Positions 5,601-60,113 of a DNA stretch of 64,000 nt are shown here, one piece after another. How positions within the stretch are numbered: the first letter of the stretch is position 1; each line of letters opens with the position of its first letter. Position numbers and translations under genes: made by a program. The notes below the pieces were generated by a model. The model searched no databases and was not told the origin of the DNA. It saw only the letters and a list, made by a program, of their open reading frames with translations. The stretch lies in sequence record PQ015379.1; one strand, written 5' to 3'.

Positions 5601-6778
5601 GGCTTTGATCCAGAAGTCGCCGGGATATTTAGAGAAACCGTTTGGTTTTCAATCCCTTTGAAATTCAGAGTGACCGATGCGCCAGATGCAAACAGACTGA
5701 GGCCCGTGGTGTTCTGGCGTGCAGCACTTCCGGTAAATTCCCAAGTCAGCTTCGTGGTTGGGCTTGGGCCAGTAAATGCGTTTGATGCGGTATCTGCCGG
5801 GGCGTTTGTTTGCTGGGTCGCCAAAGTAAACGCGGCGCCTTGTGTACCCTGCAAATACGACTGACCACCTGCGGGCGCAGCCGACGACAATGCAATGGAA
5901 CCTGCGCGGGCATTGGAGTCAACGTAACGAAGCCAGTTATCTTCGTGCTTTCCGATTCCAGAAATAACATCGGCCAGCACGTTTGTTTTGCCGCCCGGTG
6001 CCCGGAGAATTTCACCTTTTGCAGTCGTAACAAAAGTGTCACCGCCGCTAATACCCGAACTCGGGGTAGGGCTACCATCCAACGCAGCGTAAACACGACC
6101 TGCGGCACCAGCACCTTGGCCCACAACCAAAAGCATTGTAGTGTCGGCGGCTGGCGTGAAATTGTGAATTCCCGGCGCACTGAATTCAGTTTTTGTCCAA
6201 CCTACCGGAGTTGCTGCGGTGAACGGTAAAACCGGAACCGTAGCAGGTGGCTTCGGGTTAATTGCAATTGATCCAGCCCCGTCATCGTACATTTCGATTT
6301 CGAGAATGCGCAAACGGTCAACCGTACCGCCAGTTCGCGACAGGGGACCGGACGTAGCGTCATCGGTAAAGACTGCCCACACGCGAGCCGCCACGTCTTG
6401 TCCGGGTATGGTGATCGTGTTGGCTAAATCCATCGACGCGTTTGTGTTTTGATACGCCCAAGCGACCCCAAGGTCATCAACGGCGCCTGCCGTGGCGTCA
6501 ATGTCCTGAATAACAGTGTATGCGGCGTGCGAATTGCTGTAGGTATCGGCGTAACCGATTTTGATATTCCGACTCCACGAATAAAACATGACCTTGATCA
6601 TTTTTACCGTGACCGGAGTCGGAAACACCAGCGCAAACATTTCGGAAGTAGTGTTGCCGTACGTGTTGCCCGACGCCCAACCGGTGCCGGTGTTTCCGTC
6701 AATTGCCGATGCGGCGGATGGTCCAAAATCGTTGTGGGCCGTTGCGGCCTGTGCAGTGGCGCCAGTAAGTTTTGCCAT
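2654..6778 (-). CDS. Large tail fibre/adhesin: N-terminal F5/8 type C (discoidin)-like domain, Gly-rich domains, internal 17-20-aa repeats
   Basis: AASAIDGNTGTGWAS...FPTPVTVKMIKV...LEIEMY is discoidin-like. GxGGxGG-rich segments are typical of phage fibres. 1374 aa; GGAG SD. Confidence 0.75.
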   Translation of the reverse strand: MAKLTGATAQAATAHNDFGPSAASAIDGNTGTGWASGNTYGNTTSEMFALVFPTPVTVKMIKVMFYSWSRNIKIGYADTYSNSHAAYTVIQDIDATAGAVDDLGVAWAYQNTNASMDLANTITIPGQDVAARVWAVFTDDATSGPLSRTGGTVDRLRILEIEMYDDGAGSIAINPKPPATVPVLPFTAATPVGWTKTEFSAPGIHNFTPAADTTMLLVVGQGAGAAGRVYAALDGSPTPSSGISGGDTFVTTAKGEILRAPGGKTNVLADVISGIGKHEDNWLRYVDSNARAGSIALSSAAPAGGQSYLQGTQGAAFTLATQQTNAPADTASNAFTGPSPTTKLTWEFTGSAARQNTTGLSLFASGASVTLNFKGIENQTVSLNIPATSGSKPYSISLNGEVVTTGNPGSGSSVVNVVLKSTGDQTLVVTMTGSPSGTLAISSLSFGNFGYAGSQSGASGRTGQVYLLPTELTLTVGAGGVGQAGGQAVTSAQNGQRGSGGAAGGNGGDGVVIVYEFKNQPRYEVPPQPLFTNLNKTGEIAGIYRTDYIGGRFSGAEQQFVSYMHKLRERTKTVFAIMVGAGGPIGASGVPISYTAPTKLIFGASEYVASSGTAPYLNNGGAGGDFSPTEKALFSATGAGGVNSSQGSAAPDQSVIVGSYGRASSNTPGSVGGGGYGGYALIHLDNISENRTIELQVASTMGTYGFYYTNMPGAVFIFETESEYGPFISQLAELVLKRETIAGTNVTQVPELILKKEFLAATTVTQVPELILKRESDASNPLQVSHAAAVFVVDQTDPETAISQTPELILKREAPGGTQISQAVEQVFMRMGNLPYRISQLPQLLLLSEIPTIFWLNFGTLVNPVRFQLYTSLIGRATSVQPGAYIQLESPHAEGTTLIVNGVEVGLSSPVVNNDQVAIKGGVTNFWQKEMNVYTYYTKNGQIARELVGTWKIQQPDLTPTKGRAYGEYAKVSGWILLRQNYGMVTLQSVVGKSLSVIGRTLVAVYTSSRSALASLGQLVTSANAAVFRGPDSVVSKALATVFRGPDAMVNKANTQTAKGADSVIASAHVQAENSVISGWINAQVNDGKGKTEFDDGVSAGVGTIDMSSERSFAAQVEYENTDFIPTEVNYGKADDDFEIGGPVNYGKKDQKFELLEVGKVVGEYQEYTPMISTGFAQTFRMGFMDTIAYSVLTDQNYERGVGQGTGAWIVPLGYAELAKAKFGIVEMWPAEKGANHSEFVDRDTYKEGAHDFHNFSSSAFIQKIGISEFEMYANKRVESVQLSTPVTWVRAIAEMGVARLTPFIAAQSVNGRGAASLYMGFDTLQDVTDYTSQYAGVTTLQMYNGYVYNLAVDKTFVCEIYYNGPISGLIQGG
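4230..4598 (-). repeat. About seven tandem [IV][ST]Q.PEL[IV]LK[RK]E repeats within the fibre gene
   Basis: ISQLAELVLKRE, VTQVPELILKKE, VTQVPELILKRE, VSHAAAVFVVDQ, ISQTPELILKRE, ISQAVEQVFMRM, ISQLPQLLLLSE. DNA ttcagaatcaattcaggaacttgtgtaac occurs twice. Confidence 0.85.
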
Positions 6779-6787
6779 AATTGCTCC

Positions 6788-6816
6788 AAAAAAGGGGCCT
6801 TTTTATCGGCCCCTTT
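6788..6816 (-). terminator. Rho-independent terminator
   Basis: Minus strand AAAGGGGCC-gataaaaa-GGCCCCTTT followed by TTTT, just after the stop of 6823..8856. Confidence 0.8.
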
Positions 6817-27261: not shown

Positions 27262-27300
27262 GTGAGCAATACTGTAAATAGGATATATCAGTAAATTACT
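27262..27300. promoter_or_regulatory. AT-rich divergent promoter region between the structural (minus) and thyA (plus) operons
   Basis: Minus strand has TAATTTACTG and TATTTACAGTAT; plus strand has ACTGTAAATA, a 10-mer also found on the minus strand near 53432. Confidence 0.55.
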
Positions 27301-30614: not shown

Positions 30615-30851
30615 ATGCGCAAAGAGTTTTTGTCGCATTACATTTTCTGCCCGGAGGTCGTCGAACTATCGGCGGCCTTCGAGGCTGTTCTGTTGAGCCT
30701 GAACGTGTGGCCCAAAGGCAGCATGGTTCAACAGCGAAAAGGTTTACTGAAACGTGAGCAATTCCAGCTGGGCAAAACGCTGATCAAAACCGGTTTTGCA
30801 CAGACCACAATCATTTCCCGTGACGGCACCCGTCACACAATGGAGCAATAA
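30615..30851 (+). CDS. Hypothetical protein
   Basis: MRKEFLSHY...; fills the gap in the operon. Confidence 0.6.
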   Translation: MRKEFLSHYIFCPEVVELSAAFEAVLLSLNVWPKGSMVQQRKGLLKREQFQLGKTLIKTGFAQTTIISRDGTRHTMEQ

Positions 30852-30853
30852 AG

Positions 30854-31183
30854 ATGCGCAATGATTTCGTTATGCCGAGCCACATTTCGGATCGCCTGTA
30901 CGAGCACACCAACGCGTGGACCAACTGCTGGTCGCTGCCTGATGCGGAGAAGCTGGATTCGGTGCCGGTGATCGCCATGCTGATTTCCCGCATTTCCCCG
31001 CTGTACAAGGAAATGGTGAACCACGTTTATTTCGAAGCGGAATCCCGCGAGGAAGGCCACGTCGGTTACTACAAGACGATTCCGGTTTTCATCCCGAGCC
31101 TTTCTTTCAAGTCGGGCGCCCCGATCCGTCTCGTTACCAACATCAACCGTCAGGCTCACGGCATTTTGGAGAAATTCCTGTGA
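30854..31183 (+). CDS. Hypothetical protein
   Basis: 109 aa; GGAG upstream. Confidence 0.7.
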   Translation: MRNDFVMPSHISDRLYEHTNAWTNCWSLPDAEKLDSVPVIAMLISRISPLYKEMVNHVYFEAESREEGHVGYYKTIPVFIPSLSFKSGAPIRLVTNINRQAHGILEKFL

Positions 31184-51288: not shown

Positions 51289-51303
51289 CATACCATTAAA
51301 TTA
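51289..51303 (-). promoter_or_regulatory. TAATTTAATGGTATG motif, candidate late promoter, directly after a terminator
   Basis: Same terminator-then-motif arrangement as at 12568-12614. Confidence 0.45.
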
Positions 51304-51308
51304 GTGGG

Positions 51309-51338
51309 AAAACACAAAAACCCACGATTAAGTGGGTT
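51309..51338 (-). terminator. Rho-independent terminator
   Basis: AACCCAC-ttaatc-GTGGGTT then TTTGTGTTTT. Confidence 0.75.
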
Positions 51339-52138: not shown

Positions 52139-52912
52139 TCAGTTGGTATCAGAACGGGAAGACATGATTTTGTGATTACCGCCCACTTTTTCGTCACGGT
52201 TACGACCAACTTGCAGCGTGTCGTTTCCGCCGATCTTCACCGTGCGATTTCCACCGATTTCGAGCGTGTAATTGCCGGTGATTTTTTCGTGTTTGTTGCC
52301 TTTACCTTTGGACACGCCGCCCGCCGATTTGGCCTGAACCTCATTCACTTTCGTGTTCGAAGCATTCGACACATAACCCGGCACATCGCCTTTCGACCCG
52401 GTGATGATTTCCGTGCACGAACCGACAACCGTTTTGCTGTAGTCACCGAGGAACACGAAATGCGCATCACCGGGGTTGGCCACAAATACTTCATTGGTCT
52501 GTTTGTCGATAACGATTGTGCAGCCGTTTTCCAATTCCATAACGGCACGGAAAGGGTAATTGGTATCTGCCAGTTTGGTAATCGTTTTCTTGTCGCCGGG
52601 ATAGGCCGCCAATTGTGGTTTGTGCGGGTCGCCTTTCGGAAAGCAAACACCGACCTTGCCGCCCACAGGTGGAATGTTCACGAACGCGGCGCCGGTTGCC
52701 CCTGCATCAGCAGCATAATCCTGATCCATCGGCAATGCCCACGGCAAATGCTGATCGGGAATCGTGTCGGGGAAAATACCTGCGATCCGTACGCGCACCC
52801 GACGTGCTTTGCGTGGATCTTTATTGTCTACCACAACGCCCGCGTAAATGATCTTGGGATCGAGGCCTTGGCGTTGCAGGACTTTGCTGGAATTAATCGG
52901 TGCCCCGGCCAT
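52139..52912 (-). CDS. Baseplate central spike, gp5/VgrG-like (OB fold plus beta-helix)
   Basis: YAGVVVDNKDPRKARRVRVRI, LPWALP, IPPVGGKVGV; C-terminal GNxxxxIG repeats. Confidence 0.92.
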   Translation of the reverse strand: MAGAPINSSKVLQRQGLDPKIIYAGVVVDNKDPRKARRVRVRIAGIFPDTIPDQHLPWALPMDQDYAADAGATGAAFVNIPPVGGKVGVCFPKGDPHKPQLAAYPGDKKTITKLADTNYPFRAVMELENGCTIVIDKQTNEVFVANPGDAHFVFLGDYSKTVVGSCTEIITGSKGDVPGYVSNASNTKVNEVQAKSAGGVSKGKGNKHEKITGNYTLEIGGNRTVKIGGNDTLQVGRNRDEKVGGNHKIMSSRSDTN

Positions 52913-53217
52913 TACGGTTGATTACCGGTAATCGTGCACCACAGCATTTTGGCCCGCACAGCAAATGGACAACAAACCATGTTGAAATACCAATGCAGTG
53001 CGGTATCAGGATGGCTTGGGTCATGCTGGCGATACGTGAGGTCGGAAATGGCGCCGCTCACATAATCCGCGTATTGCATTCGTTGCGGATTATTCAACCC
53101 TTTTTCCAGCAAATCCAACAGGTCGAAATTGATGTGCGGTTCGCTGGTGTGTGCCAGTTTATTCAGGGCGTCCAGCTGTTCTTCAGGAGAAAACGAATCC
53201 CACATTTTAGGCTCCAT
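52912..53217 (-). CDS. Hypothetical protein
   Basis: About 100 aa; TAATG-coupled to the spike gene. Confidence 0.55.
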   Translation of the reverse strand: MEPKMWDSFSPEEQLDALNKLAHTSEPHINFDLLDLLEKGLNNPQRMQYADYVSGAISDLTYRQHDPSHPDTALHWYFNMVCCPFAVRAKMLWCTITGNQP

Positions 53218-53222
53218 AAACG

Positions 53223-53259
53223 AAAAAACCGCGCCGTGCAATTGCTCACAGGGCGCGGT
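53223..53259 (-). terminator. Rho-independent terminator
   Basis: ACCGCGCC...GGCGCGGT followed by TTTTT. Confidence 0.8.
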
Positions 53260-53420
53260 CGGTTGTGTACCACCTTTGCCTGAACAAAGGAGAGATTGCG
53301 CAGCGTCAATGCGTTTAGTTTTAATCTGGTGACATTCGGTTTATGTGGCCATTCAAGTCCAACCGCTGCCTATCCCTGATCCTATTTGTGTTGGCTGGTG
53401 CCGACGCTGCGCAATCCCTA
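53223..53420 (-). ncRNA. Candidate ~200-nt structured ncRNA downstream of the portal gene
   Basis: 14-bp perfect inverted repeat (53294-53307 / 53403-53416), extendable to 17-19 bp with G-U pairs, around ~95 nt; then a CCTTTG/CAAAGG hairpin and the terminator; AT-rich promoter-like TGTAAATAAGTAT upstream; no credible minus-strand ORF. Confidence 0.55.
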
Positions 53421-53458
53421 CGATACTTATTTACAGTTTTTAGGCTGCTAGTTCTAAA

Positions 53459-55408
53459 TTACAAACGAGTTTTCCGGCGACGACCTTGGGAATCCGCTTC
53501 ACGCAGCATCTTTTCGATCTTCCGGTTTTGCCGTTCATGCGCTTGTTTCTGATTGGTCAGAATGCGTTTTTTGCCGTCGTGCGTATAGCCGTAGGCTTCA
53601 CCCATTTCGCCGAAATCACGATTTGCCAAACCAACGATTTTGCCATTGTTACGGGCCAATACGTCGGAATGCGTGTAATCCAGATTTTGGTTGTAGAGCG
53701 AATGCGCTTCGGCCACAAACGCTTGGAAACGACCGGGGTGATTGCGCGCCATGTAATCCATTTGCGCATCGTACGCAGCAGCCGTGCCCATGAACGGAAC
53801 CGCCGAAGCGAAACCGCCCATACCACCACCGCCACCGTCACCGCCCATCATATCGTCAATACCGTATTTCTTTTTCAGTTCTTTGATTTTCTTTTGGTAT
53901 TGGTACAGCTGTTCCTGCGCCTGCAAATCGGAATCTTGACCGGCCAGCAAACGGTCGAGGTTCAGGCCACCGGCAGCAGCCATCACGCGCAGCGGAACAG
54001 GTACGCCTTTATCGGACATTGCTTGCAGCATATCCATATATTGCTGATCGCCTTCGGGCTGCAAAGTCTTTTCCCAGTGCACGGATGGAATCAACAATTT
54101 GGTGCCGTCGTTGAGACGTTCGAAGCTGCCCAGCGGATCGAGTTTGTCGAGGCTGTTACCACGGGTCGAAAGCTTGCCATCACGGTTCAGCACGTAGCCT
54201 TTCAACGCACTGATCATCGGGAAAATGCGGCTGTACAAAGTTTTGCGCGTCAGCCAATCCCGTTCGGTGCGAATCGCGTCGATGAAGAACGAAGTTGACG
54301 TGTCGCCGTTTGCATACGTCGCGTCACCAGAAAGGAAAGCATCGGAAATACCGAGGGCTTTCATTTTGATGGAATCAATCGCGTCCTTGTTATCGAAGAT
54401 GGTCCAGCCGCCTTGTGGGTCGCGAATTTCTTCGGTGGAAATACCACCGCGCGTAGCGACTACCGCGCCAACCGGGTCAGCGTCGGCGTTCATGAACATA
54501 TCCATGACTGCCTGCATATCGGCCAGCGTAGGTTCCCATTCACCAGCGCCATCAAGCGTGACGTGCAGAATGCCTTTTTGACGCATGGCAGAACGAACAA
54601 GCGTGCCACGGAACAGGTTTTTTTCCAGCAAATACCACGGCATGATGCGGCGGAAATAGCTGGTGCCTGTCGAAGAGGAACCAGAGCGGCGCGGAACGTA
54701 AACGGTGGATTTCTGGTCGAGTTCCAGTGCTTCGTTCGACAGCTGTTTCATCACATCAGCGCCCAAGAATTCACGCAGCGCTTTTACACGCGGCGAATCC
54801 GATTGCATGGTGCTGCGAATGTATTCAGGGAACGCAACGGTGATCAGCGGATCAGTGCCATGGAATGGCAGTTGGTCGAGCTTGGTGTTTTCGTACGCGT
54901 GCGGCATTACCCGGCTGAAAACTTGGGTCTTTTCGTTGTACAACAGCGAAGCGATGAAACCGCCTTTTACGTTGTAGTCGATTGCCACATCCGGCATCAG
55001 GTTGCGGATATCAAGACGGTCGATGTTTTCCATGAAATCGTCCATGACCTTGCGGTCCATGATGCCCGAAATCGTGAAGTCAGAAAACATCAGCTGCGAT
55101 TTGATATCGACGATAGAGCCGCCGATGGAATCGTTGTAATACATGTCAGTGTAAATCCGCATGACCAGCTTTTTCTGCTCAAGGTCTTCGGAAAACACAA
55201 TGTCTTTCAGCAGCGGGTCAATGTCGATTTCAATCGGCATCTGCGACAGCTGCGCGTTGCCACCAGAAGCTGCGGTGGCCAGATATTCGTCGATCTTTTG
55301 TTGATCGGTTTTCGGGTAATGCTGCTTCGACATGCCCATGTGCTGGGGACGACTCGGCTGCTGCGGAGCCGACGAAATTTGAGTGCGATTCGTTTTGCGT
55401 AGTTTCAT
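53459..55408 (-). CDS. Portal protein
   Basis: About 649 aa, downstream of TerL. KALGISDAFLSGDATYANGDTSTSFFIDAIRTERDWL fits the portal crown pattern. TAATG coupling gives the start MKLRK. Confidence 0.75.
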   Translation of the reverse strand: MKLRKTNRTQISSAPQQPSRPQHMGMSKQHYPKTDQQKIDEYLATAASGGNAQLSQMPIEIDIDPLLKDIVFSEDLEQKKLVMRIYTDMYYNDSIGGSIVDIKSQLMFSDFTISGIMDRKVMDDFMENIDRLDIRNLMPDVAIDYNVKGGFIASLLYNEKTQVFSRVMPHAYENTKLDQLPFHGTDPLITVAFPEYIRSTMQSDSPRVKALREFLGADVMKQLSNEALELDQKSTVYVPRRSGSSSTGTSYFRRIMPWYLLEKNLFRGTLVRSAMRQKGILHVTLDGAGEWEPTLADMQAVMDMFMNADADPVGAVVATRGGISTEEIRDPQGGWTIFDNKDAIDSIKMKALGISDAFLSGDATYANGDTSTSFFIDAIRTERDWLTRKTLYSRIFPMISALKGYVLNRDGKLSTRGNSLDKLDPLGSFERLNDGTKLLIPSVHWEKTLQPEGDQQYMDMLQAMSDKGVPVPLRVMAAAGGLNLDRLLAGQDSDLQAQEQLYQYQKKIKELKKKYGIDDMMGGDGGGGGMGGFASAVPFMGTAAAYDAQMDYMARNHPGRFQAFVAEAHSLYNQNLDYTHSDVLARNNGKIVGLANRDFGEMGEAYGYTHDGKKRILTNQKQAHERQNRKIEKMLREADSQGRRRKTRL

Positions 55409-57215: not shown

Positions 57216-60113
57216 TTACCGGCTGCGACCGCCGCTCATGATCATGAGCGGTGCGCCGTTGTGCGTGGTAACGCCACCGCCACCAGTGCCGACCGAAGTA
57301 CCACCACCGCCCCCGAGTTTCGAGGCACCCAGCGCGTTAGGCCGGGCCAGTGTTGGATTCAACGGTTCGTGCATCAGCATCCCGACGAATTCTTCTTCCA
57401 TCAGGCCCCACAAAAGCAAGGCCATTGCACGCCAGTTATCATCGGTATAACCGTCGCCTTTTCCAACCCCTTTTTCGAGGTCTTTGATGGTAAACATTTG
57501 CTTGAAGAGGTGCGCAATCGGTTTGTCGGCGTAGAATTCGCGGTAGTTGGAATCGAGCGCATCCAGCAGCGAACTAACCTTCAGTTCAGAACGCGGCAAA
57601 ATAATCTGCCCCTGTTCCATCCGGGTACGCACACCCACCATATCCACGTATTTCAAGCTGTGCTGTTTGGAAATGAACGAAGGCATTCCATCGTCGGCTT
57701 CCGGATCGCCCATGTCGAGGGCCGCATCATCCAGAAGTTTCAGAGAATTCCATCGGTCAGCCAGCAAAACTTTCACGTTGCGACGTTGCATGATTGGCAA
57801 AATCACTTCCGAATACACCAGCGAGTGGTTAATGCGGAAGCCCGGCAGCGGGATAATCTCGCCGATCAGGTCTACAACTAAATTAAAATTCTCGTCTACG
57901 TGTCCGCCCGCAATCGAGAAGCTGTTGTCCTTTTCCCCGGCATCGATTGCCAGAATAGAGGCCCTGCCACTCTTTTTGCATTTCTCGACCGTCGCGTACA
58001 TGAACGACTGGCCAAGCTTTTTGCTGTTTTTGAATTGCGTCGTGAGTTTTAACGCGTTCCGTGCTTCGCCTTCACAGTTCATGATGAACTTGTGGTTGGC
58101 GAGGAACGGGTTAGCAATCATCGGAGGGTTGGCCCCGAAGTTTTTCTCGGCGGAAACTGGATCTTTTTTGTATGCTTCGACGATGATTTTCGAGGTGCGT
58201 TTGAAGTTCGGGTTTACCATCCAAGTCGGACGGTGAATGCCGTAAATCGAACTGCCCTCTTTGGCACGATTCAACAGTTCGTGAATCATGTCGTTTTTCG
58301 AAGTGGGGGAAGAAACGTTCATGGCGTAAGCCGACAGTACGTCGTCAAAGCCACGGTTAAGGAGGGCGTCAGCGGCGCCGCGTACAGTGAACAAACTGTT
58401 GACCAGTGCGTCGTAAACTTCATAGGCGCTGATCTTCACTTTGTTGGAATCTTTGTCCGCATCAAAGTACGCGATTTCGTCGATGGAAATAAATACGCGG
58501 GTACGACCACGCATGACCCGTTTGTCAGGCCCCATCGGATGGTATTGCAAGCCCCGGACCCGGAAGTCAACGAAAGTATCCGTGAGCTTGAAAAGTTTTT
58601 CACCGTAGACGTTTTCGTAGTGCTTGAGCATTCCGAAATATTGCTTGAACCACTGGCCTTCCACAAGCGCGCCATAGAACGGGGTCCACAGCGTATCCTT
58701 GGCTTGGGTATAGGTCAGGGCCGCAAACGTCCCTTGCAGCATCGTGGTGCGCGACAGGCCGTAGAATTGAGCGGGCTTCTGAAGCTTCAGCAGGCGGTGT
58801 AGGTGATAGGGCGCCAAGTAGGTGCCCACGGTGTGGGATTTACCGCTGTTGTGCGAGAGGATACCGCCCGTGATGAATTGGTGCGTTTTGGGCAGTGTGA
58901 AATCGTAGGTCGGCAAAATGCCCGCTTCGGAAACGGACTTAATGCGATCAGTGAAAGTGCCTTGGCTCCAGTTATCTTGCTGCAAATTCTGGAACGTAGC
59001 GGAATCGAGTTGAATGCACGGGCCGTCAATTGTATGCGGATACCCGGCGTTCAGTAGGAGGGCAGAAACATCGCGAAGCGCAGAAGTGCCGACCAGAATT
59101 CGGCGCGCTTCACGGAACAAACCTTGCAGGAATGCTATCTGGTCCTGTTCGCGTGCAGTGCGAACAGTCAGGGGTAGAACGGTGTTAAAGAAATTCTCGC
59201 CGGTCTTGCGGGGGTTGGCCAGAACACCTTGACCGAACACGCGCTGCCCGTAGTGAATTTCCAGTTCTGTTTCGAGTTCCAGTTCACCGATTTTCACGAA
59301 ACCGTGTTCGGTATCAATCGGGTGATCGCTGGTGCCAGTAACAGAGAAACCACGTGCAGTATCCACCCGGTAAACCATTTCTGGCTCAGCGACGAAATAA
59401 TGCGACGTGGTTTCGAATTCCTGTCCGTTGTGCACTGGCTCCATGAACTCCGTGAAGCCTAGCGGCGCATCGGGGAACATTTCGTCAATGTGCAACAGAC
59501 CGTGTGCCGAAATGATCGGTGTTTCACCAACCACACAACGCTGCCCGGCGTTGATCGCCAGTTCGTTGTAATACGGCATGAGTCCTTTGGCTACGGCCTG
59601 TGACCGACCGAGGCCACAGCTGGGGCAAACCCCGTGTTCAAGCACGCAGACCTTACGTTCGAATTTCGAATACGTGTCGTCTACTTTGTGTTTTTCCAGC
59701 ATCCATTCCATGTCAGTGCAGCGCGGGCAGTAGTCGTTAAACGCAACGATGCCCCACAGCAGCTGTTCAAGGAACGGACGTTCATCGCCGATGGTGCCGA
59801 AGCGATCCTGCGTAACCCACTCATAGAAATTCGCGGCAGTGGGAAGGTCACTGTCATCGATTTTCATGTCCTTCGGAATGACGACTTTCGACGCCATCAA
59901 TTCGCGAATTGTTTTCGCGATATTGATTTCCGAATCCACATCCATCGAGGTAAGCATGGATGCGGCGGACTTGCCCATGTGCTCAATATCGTTGTGCACC
60001 GGGGTCCGTCCGTTTTCCTTCAGGCTCAGAAGGTAGTCGAACGGGTTTTCCTTGTTTACAACGATACGTTTATCGGGGACTAAAATTCCCCCCTTCGATT
60101 TTTTCATCTTCAT
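57216..60113 (-). CDS. terL: Terminase large subunit containing an intein
   Basis: Walker A AGQR|SGKS split by the intein; Walker B FISIDEIAYF; NVSSP motif; RNase H-like ILAIDAG and DDNWRA; N-terminal CxxC pairs; ATGA coupling gives the start. Confidence 0.92.
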   Translation of the reverse strand: MKMKKSKGGILVPDKRIVVNKENPFDYLLSLKENGRTPVHNDIEHMGKSAASMLTSMDVDSEINIAKTIRELMASKVVIPKDMKIDDSDLPTAANFYEWVTQDRFGTIGDERPFLEQLLWGIVAFNDYCPRCTDMEWMLEKHKVDDTYSKFERKVCVLEHGVCPSCGLGRSQAVAKGLMPYYNELAINAGQRCVVGETPIISAHGLLHIDEMFPDAPLGFTEFMEPVHNGQEFETTSHYFVAEPEMVYRVDTARGFSVTGTSDHPIDTEHGFVKIGELELETELEIHYGQRVFGQGVLANPRKTGENFFNTVLPLTVRTAREQDQIAFLQGLFREARRILVGTSALRDVSALLLNAGYPHTIDGPCIQLDSATFQNLQQDNWSQGTFTDRIKSVSEAGILPTYDFTLPKTHQFITGGILSHNSGKSHTVGTYLAPYHLHRLLKLQKPAQFYGLSRTTMLQGTFAALTYTQAKDTLWTPFYGALVEGQWFKQYFGMLKHYENVYGEKLFKLTDTFVDFRVRGLQYHPMGPDKRVMRGRTRVFISIDEIAYFDADKDSNKVKISAYEVYDALVNSLFTVRGAADALLNRGFDDVLSAYAMNVSSPTSKNDMIHELLNRAKEGSSIYGIHRPTWMVNPNFKRTSKIIVEAYKKDPVSAEKNFGANPPMIANPFLANHKFIMNCEGEARNALKLTTQFKNSKKLGQSFMYATVEKCKKSGRASILAIDAGEKDNSFSIAGGHVDENFNLVVDLIGEIIPLPGFRINHSLVYSEVILPIMQRRNVKVLLADRWNSLKLLDDAALDMGDPEADDGMPSFISKQHSLKYVDMVGVRTRMEQGQIILPRSELKVSSLLDALDSNYREFYADKPIAHLFKQMFTIKDLEKGVGKGDGYTDDNWRAMALLLWGLMEEEFVGMLMHEPLNPTLARPNALGASKLGGGGGTSVGTGGGGVTTHNGAPLMIMSGGRSR
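58848..59537 (-). mobile_element. Intein, 230 aa, with a degenerate LAGLIDADG remnant
   Basis: Begins CVVGET; block B VTGTSDHPI; ends YDFTLPKTHQFITGGILSHN followed by Ser +1; FLQGLF remnant. Confidence 0.95.

Follow-up and report, generated by a model that had tools for sequence, protein, structure and literature searches.

The gap that follows the portal gene of Pseudomonas jumbo phage HRDY3 probably contains a small noncoding transcription unit, nested between two late gene blocks, that serves both as an attenuating leader and as a small-RNA gene. We analyzed a 64,000-nucleotide (nt) stretch of the HRDY3 genome (PQ015379.1, 313,683 bp), hereafter the window, which is 100% identical to that genome around the finding; window coordinates equal record coordinates minus 62,000, with the strand unchanged. 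All features described below lie on the minus strand unless marked otherwise. In the mechanism that we propose, tandem promoters, one late-type at the portal stop codon and one middle-type 25 nt farther on, would start a minus-strand RNA that would fold as a rod and continue through a small hairpin into a strong intrinsic terminator. The majority of transcripts would end at this point, yielding a species of roughly 200–225 nt (the predicted length is ∼190–240 nt across the variants found in related phages), and the fraction that reads through would be the sole visible source of mRNA for the next four genes, which form a baseplate-hub block. The terminated RNA should be stable, its 5′ end being locked in the closing stem, which begins 8 nt after the middle-type promoter word, and its 3′ end in the hairpin of the terminator.

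Our best reading is thus a promoter- and terminator-bounded leader or small RNA, which represents a new family of a type that Pseudomonas phages are known to have. A preliminary description of the gap had proposed an independently transcribed, structured minus-strand RNA, and that proposal is now well supported by the statistics of the promoter words, the orientation of the terminator, covariation, and an excess of G-U over A-C pairs. The promoter-like word, closing stem, loop words, small hairpin, and terminator that it listed all lie where it had placed them. Its interpretation holds in part: the structured RNA stands, and the second, late-type word at the portal stop and the role as a leader had been missed.

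Fold and Covariation of the RNA Domain

The predicted fold of the domain is a rod that consists of a closing stem (P1), a large internal loop, two inner helices (P2 and P3), and an apical hairpin. P1 pairs its 5′ arm (53403–53419) with its 3′ arm (53291–53307) over 17 positions, including one G-U pair and 14 consecutive Watson–Crick pairs. With 95 nt between its arms, it is the sole inverted repeat of at least 17 nt with distant arms in the window. The loop that it closes contains two copies of CACCAG and three GGA-containing words. The internal loop has a 5′ strand of 21 nt (53382–53402) and a 3′ strand of 15 nt (53308–53322), beyond which lies the inner rod (53323–53381), where single-sequence folds place P2 (53381–53374 with 53329–53323), P3 (53370–53361 with 53340–53331), and the apical hairpin. 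Downstream of P1 stands a small hairpin of 6–7 bp (53273–53290), whose stem sequence is kept in every domain-bearing variant and is lost together with the domain. The minimum free energy of a 226-nt stretch is −82.1 kcal/mol, compared with −60.8 ± 4.7 kcal/mol in 200 shuffles (z = −4.5), none of which was as stable.

Relatives were sought through the portal gene, which returned 22 IMG/VR loci and one new metagenome locus; the nearest named phages by portal identity are Lu11 (78%) and PaBG (61%). The metagenome scan contributed one variant (L034), a terminator pattern search added one new contig with the same variant as L018, and no portal relative was found in the genome collection. Ten distinct variants of the unit, in four groups, were recovered among Lu11-like phages: group A (HRDY3 and L005), group B (L010, L012, and L013), group C (L014, L017, and L018), and group D (Lu11 and L034). 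Every one of the ten carries the promoter words, a long closing stem, the small hairpin, and the terminator, and in eight of them the domain measures 127–137 nt. The closing-stem sequences are completely different between groups, and the stem of Lu11 extends for only ∼9–10 bp. The inverted repeat is nonetheless kept, with compensating changes; the preliminary description had named the lack of either in relatives as evidence against the RNA.

To describe this covariation, P1, P2, P3, and the apical helix were drawn by hand on an unambiguous MAFFT alignment of the three group-B variants. In this unfitted alignment (n = 3), pairing holds in 97% of cells, and both sides have changed at 11 of 39 pairs, against 0–1 such pairs when the partner is slid by 1–3 columns. 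When eight variants are aligned to the model, a fit that biases the result toward pairing, 91% of cells are paired and 26 of 39 pairs are changed on both sides; none of 500 shuffles reaches any of these measures, and slid versions are 32–46% paired. The two results agree in direction. Both-side changes in the eight variants fall in 13 of 17 P1 pairs, 9 of 11 P3 pairs, and 3 of 7 P2 pairs; P3 already shows them at 7 of 11 pairs in the unfitted alignment, and group C has five additional compensated P1 pairs of its own.

Aligned by MAFFT alone, groups A and B were offset from each other by one column and P2 was wrongly placed, and we therefore built the covariance model from group B only. That model matches L005 (E = 1e-7), L018 (E = 2e-4), and L034 (E = 0.2) and finds the window copy at 53292–53418 (E = 2.4e-6); a second covariance model added Lu11 (E = 2e-14). 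No second copy was found in the HRDY3 genome, nor any match in 674 kb of unrelated viral DNA, a control made up of the unrelated viruses retrieved by an IMG/VR search for the tandem-promoter pattern, which is too AT-rich to be specific. PaBG and the loci L021, L023, and L026 went unrecognized even with filters off, which means that the structured regions found there have either diverged too far or are not related. The RNA body is ancestral to groups A–D and was lost at least once.

The helices hold 34 G-U pairs versus 3 A-C pairs. This excess, the U-G and G-U pairs of the terminator stem, and the minus-strand U run identify the element as RNA of the gene-sense strand, rather than a DNA cruciform. 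Comparison of sense and antisense folding energies left the strand undecided, and it was the count of G-U versus A-C pairs that decided it. Identity to HRDY3 is 49–65% in the RNA domain, 55–83% in the coding flanks, 77–86% in the promoter block (groups A, B, and D), and 63–94% in the small hairpin plus terminator. The helices drift and undergo repair, and the signals are kept.

Rfam contains no match to the window at the gathering score, and none to seven relatives up to E = 1. A permissive scan of 53100–53600 (E = 10) gave four weak generic hairpin matches, to microRNA and atpB models, and no 6S match. The Rfam search that the preliminary description had proposed as a check thus gave no family match, and the element belongs to no catalogued RNA family.

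Promoter Signals

The late-type word TAATTTA (53455–53461) opens with the three bases of the portal stop codon and is followed four bases later by TA, as elsewhere. The middle-type word CTGTAAATA (53428–53436) comes 25 nt after it. This gap is the sole HRDY3 site at which both words stand in tandem, 25 nt apart. Both words respect the direction of transcription. TAATTTA occurs 19 times in the 313-kb genome, with 17 copies co-oriented with local genes and 0 opposed, and CTGTAAATA occurs 18 times, again with 17 copies co-oriented and 0 opposed. Of the 29 gene starts listed, 11, most of them of structural genes, have a TAATTTA no more than 130 nt before them, and the copy at the portal stop is kept in most relatives, with a near-match in PaBG. 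The middle-type word is usually found 13–60 nt 5′ of the gene that opens a block for replication or nucleotide metabolism, often right after a terminator, and its exact copies in the window number 2, against 0.19 expected. The matching site in Lu11 is annotated as a “putative middle/late promoter.”

A generic sigma-70 scan found sites no more numerous than in shuffles, and the real promoter signals appear to be these phage-specific words, from which the predicted transcription start sites are taken. HRDY3 encodes a sigma factor with a Sigma70_r2 domain. T4 late promoters are single-element signals, and the late word of HRDY3 is alike in kind. For this group of phages, sigma factors have been reported in the PaBG paper (PMC7412058). 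Two other HRDY3 gaps led by CTGTAAATA show no unusual degree of structure (z = +0.7 and −1.2). The former, of ∼240 nt (record coordinates 30637–30875, outside the window), may hold an unannotated small gene.

The minus-strand copies of TAATTTA in the window have their first bases at 2656, 12579, 20520, 51303, 53461, and 57885. Across the genome, most copies of the word sit just 5′ of structural genes, and TA usually trails it by three to five bases; the copy at 57885 is located within the large terminase gene. The other CTGTAAATA copy in the window (27272–27280, plus strand) lies in a divergent intergenic region, 50 nt before the start of thymidylate synthase.

Terminator and Predicted Read-Through into the Hub Genes

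The unit ends in an intrinsic terminator (53223–53258), a GC-rich hairpin followed immediately by a U run on the transcribed strand. It comprises seven G-C pairs and an inner stem of 5 bp that includes U-G and G-U pairs; the loop is the tetranucleotide GCAA, six U form the tail, and the wording of that tail recurs after other HRDY3 terminators. The hairpin, inner stem and loop included, is identical in groups A, B, and C, and its pattern occurs once per contig in IMG/VR. This identity holds despite portals that are only 72–93% identical, a degree of conservation that seems to exceed what termination by itself would require. In the sister lineage L006–L009, two substitutions in the terminator keep the pairing and a loop of the G-N-R-A type.

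Only 17 nt separate the end of the terminator from the ATG of the hub block. Elsewhere in HRDY3 a terminator is usually followed by a promoter and then a gene. In this gap the two promoters come first, and the structured domain, the small hairpin, and the terminator follow them, in that order, before the start codon. The next terminator lies at 51338–51319 and the next late word at 51303, and neither promoter word was found between the gap and that point. Because the promoter words are absent until 51303, the four hub genes appear to depend on read-through. Judged from this layout, the gap would be at once the leader of the next four genes and a small-RNA gene.

Terminators placed right before ribosome-binding sites are found at other HRDY3 junctions. 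Since this layout recurs at several junctions, leaky termination in late blocks seems to be part of the design of the phage, and it suggests that leaky terminators inside late gene blocks are in routine use. The stretch at ∼6780–6815, 5′ of the gene that starts at 6778, is an example: a terminator hairpin and its U run lead straight into GGAG and ATG, and no promoter word intervenes.

Variants and Losses among Relatives

Several observations weigh against the proposed unit. We infer the starts, ends, and abundance of the transcript from sequence. The eight-variant alignment carries the bias noted above, and L014 and L017, which are longer variants, were not recognized by the covariance model even with filters off and were assigned by eye on the basis of shared stem and loop words. 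In 4 of the 10 variants, the antisense strand folds as stably as the sense strand. Loci L006–L009, whose portals are 90% identical to that of HRDY3, keep both promoter words and the terminator and lack the domain and the small hairpin, and L020 and L024 have no gap after the portal at all. These losses imply that the RNA is dispensable and that the promoter-terminator cassette has a life of its own. The stretch missing from L006–L009 runs exactly from the first base of P1 through the base before the terminator. In L006 (5957–6038) and L009 (5951–6030), the promoters are followed directly by the terminator and the gene, giving a predicted transcript of ∼40 nt.

More distant relatives carry other structures after the portal. 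In PaBG (L003, 4728–4940), a near-match of the late word precedes a perfect 16-bp stem around ∼65 nt, which is followed by a small hairpin and then a terminator; the middle-type word is nearly matched only beyond that terminator, before an unrelated gene. L023 (5888–6290) and L026 (5884–6290) have ∼400 nt of structured noncoding sequence after the portal, with the late word in the loop of a terminator-like hairpin and the middle-type word at the far end. The 3′ arm of that hairpin can alternatively pair with a distant segment in a 16-bp stem, so that the fold of these two loci may vary with the transcription start site. In L021, a related terminator is preceded by a shorter run of structured sequence. 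Structured RNA seems to occupy the slot after the portal across this group of phages, with homology demonstrated for groups A–D alone.

Conserved Internal Loop and Alternative Explanations

Both strands of the internal loop are conserved in sequence, the 5′ strand in groups A, B, and C as read by eye from the alignments. The 3′ strand includes an 8-position window (53322–53315) common to all ten variants, in which positions 2, 4, 6, and 8 are invariably A, A, T, and A; position 7 is G in nine variants and position 3 is T in eight. From position 6 to the P1 arm there are 7–9 nt in eight variants and 11 nt in the other two. We take this loop, from its conservation, to be the functional site and presumably a protein-binding one, for which the RNA polymerase holoenzyme is the most specific candidate partner; the RNA would presumably act in trans.

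That candidate leads to an alternative which we regard as unlikely, namely, that the RNA is a compact phage 6S-like mimic of an open promoter, transcribed from the middle-type and late-type promoters, in which the rod would occupy the host housekeeping holoenzyme while the phage sigma factor takes over. P1 would then be the downstream duplex, P2–P3 the upstream duplex, and the 3′ loop strand the −10 element. The covariation-supported rod with its central loop is consistent with such a mimic, as is the Sigma70_r2 sigma factor that the phage itself encodes. Moreover, the invariant A, A, and T at positions 2, 4, and 6 fit the second, fourth, and sixth letters of TATAAT, with the frequent T at position 3 in addition, and the 7–9 bases between the position-6 T and P1 in eight variants are unpaired, an arrangement that agrees with published 6S RNAs (PMC8876501). 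However, a five-position pattern can arise by chance, the domain is 127–137 nt long as compared with ∼200 nt, and the near-perfect helix of P1 contrasts with the bulge-interrupted arms of 6S RNAs. No Rfam 6S model matched the window or seven relatives, even at E = 1–10. Trapping holoenzyme would also tie up the core enzyme that the phage needs, and the sister lineage has lost the element. The preliminary description had listed a 6S-like decoy among its hypotheses, and of the four functions proposed there it is the only one that the present data leave standing; the rod shape and the loop pattern add to that idea, but the Rfam test of family membership failed. Our literature searches found no phage-encoded 6S-like open-promoter mimic. 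About as probable, if anything a shade less so, is a purely cis-acting leader, either a put-like antitermination RNA or a pause or fold element that sets read-through into the hub genes. The domain does lie between the sole visible promoters of the hub block and a strong terminator that stands 17 nt from the first gene of that block, and four variant groups keep the domain, the small hairpin, and the terminator as a set. Yet inspection by eye found no conserved alternative pairing with either terminator arm, nor any conserved anti-terminator pairing, sequestered ribosome-binding site, loop–loop complementarity, or leader peptide. The domain-less lineage keeps the same terminator and genes, and in PaBG a comparable stem domain and terminator precede the middle-type promoter and so cannot be a leader transcribed from it.

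Each of the remaining alternatives is weak. A near-perfect stem of 17–20 bp between two cistron blocks could be a processing or stability element for a double-strand-specific RNase, which would split the portal message from the hub message, with protective hairpins left behind and no function for the RNA itself; several HRDY3 late leaders indeed begin with hairpins. Such a role is improbable, since it leaves the conserved loop strands, the conserved inner rod, and the two dedicated promoters unexplained, and the short stem of Lu11 fits it poorly. It is very improbable that the RNA is a sponge that titrates CsrA/RsmA, as the preliminary description had also suggested. The HRDY3 copy does contain three GGA words, but their places are P2, the P2/P3 junction, and the apical helix, rather than hairpin loops; at most one of them, the junction word, is seen again outside the closest relative, being shared by groups A and B, and no Rsm/Csr family matched in Rfam. 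A packaging-motor RNA akin to the phi29 pRNA, or a DNA-level pac, cruciform, or origin site, has in its favor only the position beside the portal and terminase genes and the inverted repeat, and we find it scarcely credible. The packaging RNA is contradicted by the sister lineage L006–L009, which has lost the element alongside a 90% identical portal, and by its absence from L020 and L024, and Rfam gave no pRNA match. As for a pac or cruciform site, wobble pairs work on one strand only, so that the 34 G-U pairs would be mismatches in DNA; the pairing is kept by compensation rather than by fixed sequence, and the element can be lost. Equally hard to credit is a miniature mobile insertion whose terminal inverted repeats merely resemble an RNA stem. 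Its presence and absence are indeed clean-edged in L006–L009, but the element is single-copy in the genome and always at the same locus, its interiors are homologous across groups, and its ends differ between groups yet stay complementary, the reverse of conserved transposon ends.

Genomic Context

The order of minus-strand genes is large terminase, KTSC-domain protein, 209-aa protein, portal, gap, 97-aa protein, baseplate hub/spike protein, and two small genes. The portal gene (53459–55408, public annotation) is the upstream neighbor of the gap and matches the PHROG portal family (E = 1.8e-257). This match belongs to the 649-aa protein that adjoins the gap, as opposed to a 196-aa namesake elsewhere (record coordinates 165203–165793, outside the window) that also carries the public label “portal protein.” On the other side, a GGAG ribosome-binding site and ATG (53203–53215, with the ATG at 53205) begin the 97-aa gene (52912–53205), the first of the four-gene hub block, which spans 53205–51337; the second gene of the block matches a baseplate hub/spike family.

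The preliminary description had singled out this gap as the longest in a compact region and as devoid of a credible open reading frame (ORF), and both statements are borne out. By public annotation, the portal-to-hub gap measures 253 nt and is the longest in the window, and it has no credible ORF of at least 20 aa. The sense strand of the RNA unit contains no ORF of at least 20 aa, except for a TTG frame that crosses the terminator into the next gene. A tRNA/tmRNA scan found none.

Significance

Short promoter-terminator RNAs are appearing in many Pseudomonas phages, and almost none has a defined fold or function. The unit described here offers ten natural variants, a compensated structure, two conserved loop strands at the likely contact site, and clear predicted ends. 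It is therefore an unusually well-defined candidate for studies of expression and structure in the little-known Lu11/PaBG group, which also gains two strand-specific promoter words. If the loop were indeed to bind polymerase, the 6S principle would extend to viruses.

Comparison with Known Systems

A first parallel is provided by an ONT-cappable-seq study, in which Pseudomonas phages were found to produce numerous short RNAs that lie within 5′ untranslated regions (UTRs), between a promoter and a terminator (PMC10914365). Of the 29 candidates reported there, two from phiKZ were confirmed by northern blotting, one from YuA lies upstream of a major head gene, and one phiKZ example showed >90% termination; at such loci, according to that study, transcription yields either a dominant short RNA or a long mRNA that reads through. 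As in those 5′ UTR-derived RNAs, the HRDY3 unit has a phage promoter followed by an intrinsic terminator <250 nt on, upstream of a gene, and the published examples likewise stand upstream of structural genes and are conserved among relatives. Several features of the published candidates are shared: promoter words directly upstream, a terminator before the ATG, a predicted product of <250 nt, and, apart from the TTG frame, no ORF of at least 20 aa. Unlike the published RNAs, which are defined by transcript ends, the HRDY3 unit is predicted from sequence. It goes beyond them in its covariation-supported fold, its tandem promoters of two classes, and its ten diverged variants, and it has no sequence relation to them.

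An older parallel is lambda 6S RNA, a short late transcript that is reported to be stable and Hfq-bound (bioRxiv 10.1101/2024.10.31.621285). Like the predicted HRDY3 RNA, it is ∼200 nt long, starts from a late promoter, and ends at a terminator that must be passed for expression of the late structural genes. The two differ in that lambda read-through needs the Q protein, and their sequences and folds are unrelated; in addition, the HRDY3 unit is located inside the late region and has two promoters. We know of no Q-like read-through factor for HRDY3. The put RNA of HK022 is likewise a structured RNA that closely follows a phage promoter and precedes terminators. It consists of two short stem-loops, whereas HRDY3 has one long rod, and the rod-less lineage keeps the terminator.

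Finally, bacterial 6S RNA is a rod with a central bubble and a −10-like element in the 3′ strand of that bubble; its closing stem takes the role of the downstream helix, and a bubble that has two short arms is sufficient for function (PMC8876501). The HRDY3 domain resembles it in its closing stem, large central loop, and apical arm; the A/T pattern of its 3′ loop strand lies where 6S RNA carries the −10-like element but is short enough to be due to chance. It differs in being phage-encoded, in its length of ∼130 nt as opposed to ∼200 nt, in its near-perfect closing stem, and in its extra 3′ hairpins.
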